From positions 29,512,001 through 29,576,000 of the forward strand of contig NW_026889750.1 in assembly GCF_033153115.1 (NCBI RefSeq): 64,000 bases of DNA. Reading direction: 5' to 3'. Shown piece by piece: positions 25,873 through 27,268 of this stretch (position 1 is its first letter; each line of letters opens with the position of its first letter). The position numbers and the translations under genes are program-made. The notes beneath the pieces were generated by a model, which saw nothing but the letters and a program-made list of their open reading frames with translations, did not search any database and was not told the DNA's origin. The DNA is from Saccostrea echinata (lineage: Eukaryota).

Positions 25873-26260
25873 ATAATCAACAAACTCCAAGGTTGCTAGT
25901 TGACAGTACTGTCGACCATTGACAGTTGACTTTTCGTCAAGCTCACAAATTGCTGACATAACAATAAGAAGCACGATCAGTAGAGACGTAACGTTAGGGT
26001 TAGTCGCACAAGCTCTTAATTTGTTTCTGTAATAATTTTTAACCCATAGTATAATAATAATACAAGTTCTTAATACAAGACTTAGCTGAAATTTGCTTCT
26101 CAACCAATGAAAATCATTCGCCCAAATGTCATTCTATTTTTATCAAACCATACACGTGGGTATATTGAAGTGAAAACAAAGTATTTTCGAATAAGCTAAT
26201 GAAAATATCCACAAATGCTTCTGTTCATGTGTAGGAATTTAGGCTAGACTGTGGACATCT

Positions 26261-26333
26261 ACCTGGATAGCTTAGTGGTTAGAGCACCTGACTAGTAATG
26301 CAGGGGTCCCGGGTTCGATTCCCGGTCCAGCCA
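26261..26333 (+). pseudogene. tRNA-Thr(AGT)-like cassette in the 5' LTR
   Basis: A box TAGCTTAGTGG, CT-AGT-AA loop (AGT 26294-26296), T arm CCGGG-TTCGATT-CCCGG, T5 at 26338-26342; two acceptor-stem mismatches and one extra base in the anticodon arm. Confidence 0.8.
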
Positions 26334-26556
26334 TATGTTTTTCATTATATATATATTTATGAATTTTCAATGTATATGAACTCATTCCTCCTTTCGATAC
26401 TACAGATGGTGCCGTGGCCTACCTTGTTCAGGCAATATGATATGTATATGTAATTAATGTTAAGTCCTGACAAGGTGAACATGTGTTGTGTCTTCGGGGG
26501 CGAAGACTATTTAAGGAGGGAGGAATGTAGAAATTTAGGCAGGACTGCGGACATCG

Positions 26557-26629
26557 GCCTGGATAGCTGAGTGGTTAGAGCACCTAACTAGTAATGCAGG
26601 GTTCCCGGGTTCGATTCCCGGTCCAGCCA
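26557..26629 (+). pseudogene. tRNA-Thr(AGT)-like cassette in the 3' LTR
   Basis: A box TAGCTGAGTGG, AGT at 26590-26592, B box GGTTCGATTCC, acceptor stem 6/7 paired, T5 at 26634-26638. Confidence 0.8.
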
Positions 26630-27268
26630 TATGTTTTTCATTATATATATATTTATGTATATTAACTCATTCCTCCTTTCCATACTACACATGCAACCTC
26701 TTCCTATTTTTTTAAGACGTGTGAATGTACTTGTTGGTATAATTATTACAAAGCCTAGTAATCTATTCTTCTATTTTAATGACCGAATGCACTATCTATG
26801 GCTGGAAACACGTGGGATTTATGGAAATGTTGTATATAAGTCTTGCCTTTTGGCCTTGTGTGCCTTGTCTTGTGGACACGAGAGCCGTACGCCCTGCAAA
26901 ACGTAAGGTTTTAGACTTATAAGGCAAGCCTTACTGTGTGTACCGGCCCTTACACTTTCAGAGAGTACGCACTGACAAACTGTTTATTACCACAACGTCA
27001 AATACTAGATGCAATGCATTTTTCTGAATGTGATAAACGCGTGTCTTTTCTACAAATATCTTAAATAACTATATGTATTATTTAAAGGTTTGCACATAAA
27101 AAACCCAATATTGTAATAAATTTTAATTAAATTAATATACTGAAAGAAAAAAGAAACGCATACCTTAATATATAAAGTTAGCAGTTTCTGCACGTGTATA
27201 TAACCGGCGGCTTTTGGCCTTAAGGTCAATAGGGGTCTTTTAGTTAAAGAAATTCATGACCACGTTTC

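Follow-up and report, generated by a model that had tools for sequence, protein, structure and literature searches.

The 460-bp element at 26230-26689 of the analysed window, a 64,000-nucleotide stretch of the Saccostrea echinata genome, is very likely an old and probably dead TRIM of the Helenus group, from the oyster lineage of Helenus-2B_CGi and Helenus-4_CVi. We reread window positions 26100-26820 and found every part of the layout proposed in the original prediction (CATG-LTR-GA-PBS-interior-PPT-LTR-CATG, where PBS is the primer-binding site and PPT the polypurine tract) at its place. The features of the element are as follows.

26226..26229, + strand: left flank CATG, an apparent 4-bp target-site duplication (TSD); the same 4-mer follows the element
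26230..26404, + strand: 5' LTR, 175 bp, TGTAG...CTACA; boundaries identical in 20 other copies
26261..26333, + strand: tRNA-like unit of the 5' LTR; Rfam tRNA, 46.5 bits; A box 26268-26278, B box 26312-26322
26338..26342, + strand: T5 run, Pol III terminator-like, four bases past the 5' LTR unit; read directly
26405..26419, + strand: GA spacer and primer-binding site TGGTGCCGTGGCC; PBS itself 26407-26419; complementarity to tRNA-His
26407-26416, + strand: TGGTGCCGTG, start of the PBS; read directly
26421..26476, + strand: stem-loop 1, ACCTTGTTCAGG / CCTGACAAGGT enclosing an AT-rich loop; minimum-energy fold
26490..26507, + strand: stem-loop 2 (pre-PPT hairpin), GTCTTCG-GGGG-CGAAGAC; read directly and by folding
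26513..26525, + strand: polypurine tract AAGGAGGGAGGAA; adjoins the 3' LTR directly
26526..26689, + strand: 3' LTR, 164 bp, carrying an 11-bp deletion; alignment with the 5' LTR
26557..26629, + strand: tRNA-like unit of the 3' LTR; Rfam tRNA, 41.6 bits, and ARAGORN; A box 26564-26574, B box 26608-26618
26634-26638, + strand: T5 run, four bases past the 3' LTR unit; read directly
26690..26693, + strand: right flank CATG; read directly

The TRIM assignment follows from the repeats (175 and 164 bp, with TGTAG...CTACA ends, in an element of 460 bp overall) and from a non-coding interior of 121 bp with a PBS after the 5' LTR and a PPT before the 3' LTR. The alignment of the two LTRs gives 11 substitutions and one 11-bp indel (K2P 0.070), the very differences that had been counted by hand. 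With this divergence, the deletion and a mismatch in the PBS, the window copy is among the older members of its family. Near the element we found no ORF of at least 150 aa, and none of the ORFs of the window encodes RT or integrase. The sole long ORF of the window (11501-15604, + strand, 1367 aa) lies 10.6 kb upstream of the element. Taken together, the results below support the predicted non-coding element, in which both LTRs carry a tRNA-like unit, the PBS fits tRNA-His and TSDs of 4 bp are made.

Relation to Helenus and other TRIMs

Helenus elements are TRIMs with tRNA-derived sequence in their LTRs (Kojima 2024, PMC10886601). There are 51 families in pteriomorph bivalves, and the animal members have 4-bp TSDs (PMC10886601). 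For seven bivalve families a tRNA-Thr-like sequence was predicted in the LTR; the PBSs correspond to tRNA-His among other tRNAs, including in oyster families, with a PBS match to Gypsy-39_CGi (PMC10886601). In the family studied here each LTR carries tRNA-derived sequence, scored by Rfam and containing an A and a B box, and the TSDs are 4 bp long. The class name and the TSD length given in the original prediction agree with the published definition. The accompanying guess that the class may be known and only the family new was also correct, the class having been published in 2024 and the family being new in this genome.

To establish homology, short exact strings of the interior were located in Data S1 of Kojima (PMC10886601) and the remaining sequence was compared by eye. 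Helenus-2B_CGi of Crassostrea gigas and Helenus-4_CVi of C. virginica have the same order of parts as the window element, TGTAG/TGTGG...CTACA ends and a 4-bp TSD. Common to all of them are a tRNA-like core (...GCAGGGGTCCCGGGTTCGATTCCCGGTCCAGCCATAT plus a T-run), the PBS TGGTGCC(G/A)TGGCC, an interior stem CCTTGTTCAGG / CCTGACAAGG, the hairpin GTCTTCG-GRGK-CGAAGAC and the PPT. Outside the AT-rich loop, about 95 of 98 interior bases match Helenus-2B_CGi (hand count), and in the 3' half of the tRNA-like unit 41 consecutive bases up to the T-run are identical to the published consensus (hand count). The window family and the Helenus-2B_CGi lineage also have in common a bulged G that spoils the anticodon stem, and this feature is therefore ancestral to the oyster lineage of the window family.

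The differences concern mainly length. The LTR of the window element measures 175 bp versus 153 and 161 bp in Helenus-2B_CGi and Helenus-4_CVi; it is longer because of an AT-rich stretch in U5, and U3 has diverged. The interior of 121 bp exceeds the published 114 bp because the AT-rich loop differs, and the terminator run is T5 rather than the T4 of the two published families. The window family comprises 78 LTRs and 30 interiors versus 260 and 45 for Helenus-2B_CGi, which Kojima counted differently. None of the Helenus families listed by Kojima has the 175/121-bp dimensions (PMC10886601). Judged by family sizes and sequences, the window family is a counterpart family in a genome outside the Kojima survey.

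Plant Cassandra, with 5S rRNA in its LTRs, and nemertean Ajax were grouped as 'TRIMp3' (PMC10886601). They are likewise TRIMs whose LTRs hold a Pol III promoter and terminator that originate from the gene for a small RNA. However, their unit derives from 5S, their TSDs are 5 bp long and their hosts are others, so that they are alike in working and do not belong to the same family. The element biv-TRIM (Satovic et al. 2019, PMC6934838) is a bivalve TRIM too, found in tandem arrays and with no known helper, but it lacks a canonical PBS, has no reported tRNA-like unit and contains another inner domain. It is unrelated to the window element.

The tRNA-like unit, transcription and the primer

Both LTR units exceed the Rfam gathering score for tRNA (29 bits). 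Comparison by eye with the type-2 Pol III consensus shows agreement in the A box (TAGCTTAGTGG, TAGCTGAGTGG) as well as in the B box (GGTTCGATTCC). The 21-mer of the B box had no matches in 100 shuffles of the window, and the entire unit recurs genome-wide. Of the predicted tRNA-Thr(AGT) cassette, the A and B boxes stood and the tRNA-Thr gene did not. ARAGORN calls both units but, owing to an anticodon loop of 8 nt (with a four-base anticodon, 'agta'), gives them no isotype, and the first two acceptor pairs of the 5' LTR unit are mismatched; in a functional tRNA-Thr gene the loop would have 7 nt and the acceptor stem would be paired. The LTR units are thus tRNA-like and are not tRNA-Thr genes. 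Minus-strand Rfam matches to 'Plastid-ycf2' (46.9 and 35.1 bits versus a gathering score of 65.7) were rejected, being the tRNA-like unit read in antisense.

A second family in this genome, which resembles Helenus-2C_CGi and Helenus-1_SaGl, has a tRNA-like unit about 80% alike, and the cloverleaf is 92% paired across both families. Two acceptor-stem pairs differ in both bases from one family to the other (CG to UA, AU to GC), and pairing kept in this way is more than a DNA promoter alone would need.

Judging from its motifs, the tRNA-like unit with its A box, B box and T5 run would serve as a Pol III promoter and terminator. On this model R would be the tRNA-like segment of ~77 nt, with a U3 of 31 bp, a U5 of ~62 bp and a genomic RNA of ~377 nt. 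An RNA spanning R-U5-PBS-interior-PPT-U3-R would be made, plus-strand DNA would be primed at AAGGAGGGAGGAA, and an integrase acting in trans would join the TG...CA ends to a 4-bp staggered cut. A T5 or T6 run is present in 25 of 26 LTRs (13 copies measured), and this fits a putative terminator that would define the R/U5 border. The T5 run of the 5' LTR must then be read through to produce the genomic RNA; given its position after the unit, most Pol III products would be ~80 nt long and end well short of the PBS. Retroviruses similarly ignore the poly(A) signal in their 5' repeat.

The same T5 run, lying directly past the unit and expected to end Pol III transcripts before the PBS, is one reason to ask whether the genomic RNA of the same TRIM comes instead from Pol II or from read-through of the flanks. 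The tRNA-like unit would then play another role: a fold that defines or protects the ends, an aid to export or packaging, or a passenger left by a SINE insertion. The two compensatory acceptor-stem changes, unneeded by a DNA promoter alone, also favour this view, and Kojima calls the Pol III function of Helenus unvalidated (PMC10886601). On balance we consider it unlikely, though deserving of serious weight, since near-consensus A and B boxes occur in both LTRs and in sister families, the 5S analogue Cassandra is reported to be transcribed from its own Pol III promoter (PMC10886601), and a Pol II promoter would hardly fit into the U3 upstream of the unit, which is only 31 bp long. That the units are two functional tandem tRNA-Thr(AGU) genes instead of parts of LTRs is hardly conceivable: although the Rfam tRNA scores exceed the gathering score and ARAGORN calls one degenerate copy elsewhere tRNA-Thr(AGT), the anticodon loop has 8 nt in 36 of the ~39 family LTRs called by ARAGORN, the acceptor stem contains mismatches, the unit always lies within an LTR, and it has little likeness to a tRNA-Thr(CGT) of this genome outside universal tRNA positions.

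The predicted complementarity of the PBS to tRNA-His at its 3' end holds at 12 of 13 bases in the window element and at 13 of 13 in the copies L002 and L010 (tRNA-His reference: Fig. S2 of Kojima, PMC10886601, and the L054 sequence). At locus L054 (L054:821-1215; C37, ~2976575-2976969) the PBS position is occupied exactly by a tRNA-His(GTG) that is complete but for its six final bases and oriented as copying of the entire primer by reverse transcriptase would leave it. This tRNA sequence is flanked by inverted LTRs of a sister Helenus family (arms of 173 nt, 95% complementary) with a perfect junction, ACATTTCGTG / CACGAAATGT. The locus has the appearance of a relic of plus-strand strong-stop DNA whose synthesis ran on through the entire primer tRNA before the strand folded back on itself, and the presence of tRNA-His at the PBS position supports it as the real primer.

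Loci L031-L060 (e.g. L038:1404-1704, L045, L053) contain at least two further Helenus families with the PPT string and a tRNA-His PBS. The LTRs of one start with TGTGGCGG and are accompanied by the full 18-nt PBS; those of the other start with TGTAA. Genome-wide, 417 exact matches to the PPT string TTAAGGAGGGAGGAATGT were counted versus one for the control, and 207 of these PPT-LTR junctions lack a G two bases after TGT.

The family and its insertion sites

We searched the window's own genome (923 Mb) for the family and found at least 20 full-length matches (80-93% identity) and 11 LTR-only matches, with shared boundaries; element conservation was assessed position by position. The 1549 first-look candidates of this search were mostly other tRNA-like repeats. 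Near-exact pattern counts gave 30 LTR-PBS junctions (0 for the control) and 78 LTR 3' ends (0 for the control), which correspond to roughly 28 interior-bearing elements and ~27 lone or unpaired LTRs. The family is small, with a low copy number in this genome.

Perfect 4-bp TSDs flank 13 full copies and represent 10 different sequences (CATG, GTAT (twice), ACAG, ATAA, TATA, GTAC, AAGG, ATAG, GTTT, CTAG), and several further copies match at 3 of 4 bases. The 13 copies include two duplicate-contig pairs, and the distinct sites number 11. Palindromic 4-mers are found at 4 of the 11 distinct sites versus 6% expected (hand count). K2P between paired LTRs ranges across copies from 0 in L005 and L006, the two copies with identical LTRs, to 0.19. 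The family is mobile, generates 4-bp TSDs, and its sister copies were recently active. The other copies with the same boundaries and varied 4-bp TSDs on which the original prediction had staked its case do exist, as do lone matches of LTR size. An ordinary tRNA-derived SINE duplicated locally, which the two tRNA-like heads 296 bp apart might bring to mind, has practically no chance of being the right description in view of the TG...CA ends, the PBS and PPT at canonical positions, the at least 20 two-repeat copies at unrelated loci with 4-bp TSDs, the lone LTRs, and the lack of an A-rich or simple-repeat tail.

Several loci have features of their own. In each of the pairs L002/L003 (C54, C30) and L007/L008 (C76, C14), one insertion with identical flanks is found twice, on two contigs and in opposite orientations, probably because haplotypes were left uncollapsed or pieces of the assembly duplicated; copy counts are slightly inflated as a result. 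L016/L020 form a tandem LTR-interior-LTR-interior-LTR array. The family copy at C43:3670666-3674591 (L028:1731-3230, L030:1-1500) is split near interior position 232 by a ~3.9-kb insertion, in which one ORF encodes a tyrosine-recombinase domain (Phage_integrase, E 2e-08); the insertion may be a DIRS- or Crypton-like element.

The window element lies within an older host repeat, whose two halves are given below.

26067..26227, + strand: older host repeat, left half; nine full-length paralogues scored, 93-98% identity to eight of them and 83% to the other
26694..26950, + strand: older host repeat, right half; 88-90% identity to the same paralogues

In the paralogues the two halves abut without the element. 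We found 27 exact empty junctions reading GCTTCTGTTCAACCTCTTCC and one further variant, likewise without CATG. None of the 28 paralogous empty sites that were read contains the 4-mer; the sequence there is GTT/CAACC. Hence the window carries the 460-bp element plus eight bases, and its CATG was not duplicated from ancestral paralogue sequence. Two readings of the CATG remain: a private 4-base insertion in this copy of the host repeat before integration, based on the right half being 2-11 bases longer in the window than in the paralogues, or a non-canonical junction. The family-wide 4-bp TSD is unaffected by this puzzle. The host repeat has at least 27 paralogues; in some of them the right end recurs in inverted orientation ~100 nt upstream, so that the repeat may be MITE-like.

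Interior stem-loops and a proposed helper

The interiors of both families are predicted to fold in the order PBS, stem-loop 1, hairpin 2, PPT, and a comparison of the folds is suggestive of stem-loops kept across families. Besides the window copy, 12 others show stem-loop 1 in their minimum-energy fold. Its inner CAGG/CCUG stem is kept in both families, with one CAGA/UCUG variant, while the outer stems differ between them (ACCUUGU/ACAAGGU versus CCCUGG/CCAGGG). Hairpin 2 has the stem GUCUUCG/CGAAGAC in the window family and GGUCUUUGG/CCAAAGACC, GUCUUCGG/CCGAAGAC or GUCUUUUG/CAAAAGAC in the second family. Among the distinct interior sequences of the two families, its pair 6 is C-G in 11, U-A in 6 and U-G in 2. 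Published Helenus consensuses with other PBS types contain a hairpin with a TTCG-RGGR-CGAA core, and a similar hairpin is carried by the published Lys-PBS families (PMC10886601, Data S1).

The statistical signal of these structures is modest. Z-scores for the fold of the interior range from -0.8 to -2.4, and the stems were counted by a script whose shuffle control is weak, 30% of shuffles giving a stem of at least 7 bp. RNAalifold, run on MAFFT alignments of the interiors and of the 40-nt stretch preceding the PPT, found nothing, since indels put the stems out of register. The structural covariation involves few independent changes and is suggestive only. The word 'hairpin' is absent from the main text of Kojima (PMC10886601). 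The original prediction likened hairpin 2 to the pre-PPT motif of Gypsy-group elements; nothing specific on such a hairpin in Gypsy elements emerged from a literature search.

The enzymes would be supplied by a Ty3/Gypsy helper, for which the two interior stem-loops might act as cis signals. A search for such a helper with the PBS pattern ACANNTGGTGCCGTGACC gave 31 genome sites, nearly all of them other Helenus families or broken copies. In five 10-kb stretches around PBS sites that did not look like TRIMs we found no LTR pairs, no RT and no integrase, the only match there being a weak HSP70. The family loci examined likewise had no ORF for RT or for integrase. Genome-wide there are 92 sites with the full 18-nt His PBS and 417 with the PPT-TGT string; among the matches listed, the first 100 of each PPT search, no PBS was paired with a PPT at a distance of 3-10 kb, which is a weak negative.

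The element has little value as a discovery, because a 2024 publication already covers the class, its occurrence in oysters, the LTR resembling tRNA-Thr, the tRNA-His primer and the duplication of 4 bp. Two features appear to go beyond the Kojima paper: the acceptor-stem pairing kept between families through double changes, and the two interior stem-loops apparently kept across families. Further additions are the non-canonical state of the tRNA-like unit and the T5 run after it. The finding is of use for annotation: tRNA genes or pseudogenes will be called wrongly in this genome at the family's 78 LTRs and at several hundred LTRs belonging to sister families. Two points may merit further work: by what means an LTR element driven by Pol III passes the terminator in its own 5' LTR, and the conserved interior with its two hairpins, a candidate signal for helper recognition. 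Overall, we tentatively propose, as a possibility that we would not yet back, that oyster Helenus interiors constitute a conserved structured RNA module (PBS, stem-loop 1 and a hairpin with a G-rich loop 3-5 bases before the PPT) common to families with different LTRs, which together with the tRNA-like R, its acceptor stem kept by compensatory change, might form the recognition or packaging signal by which one Gypsy lineage mobilises several families.
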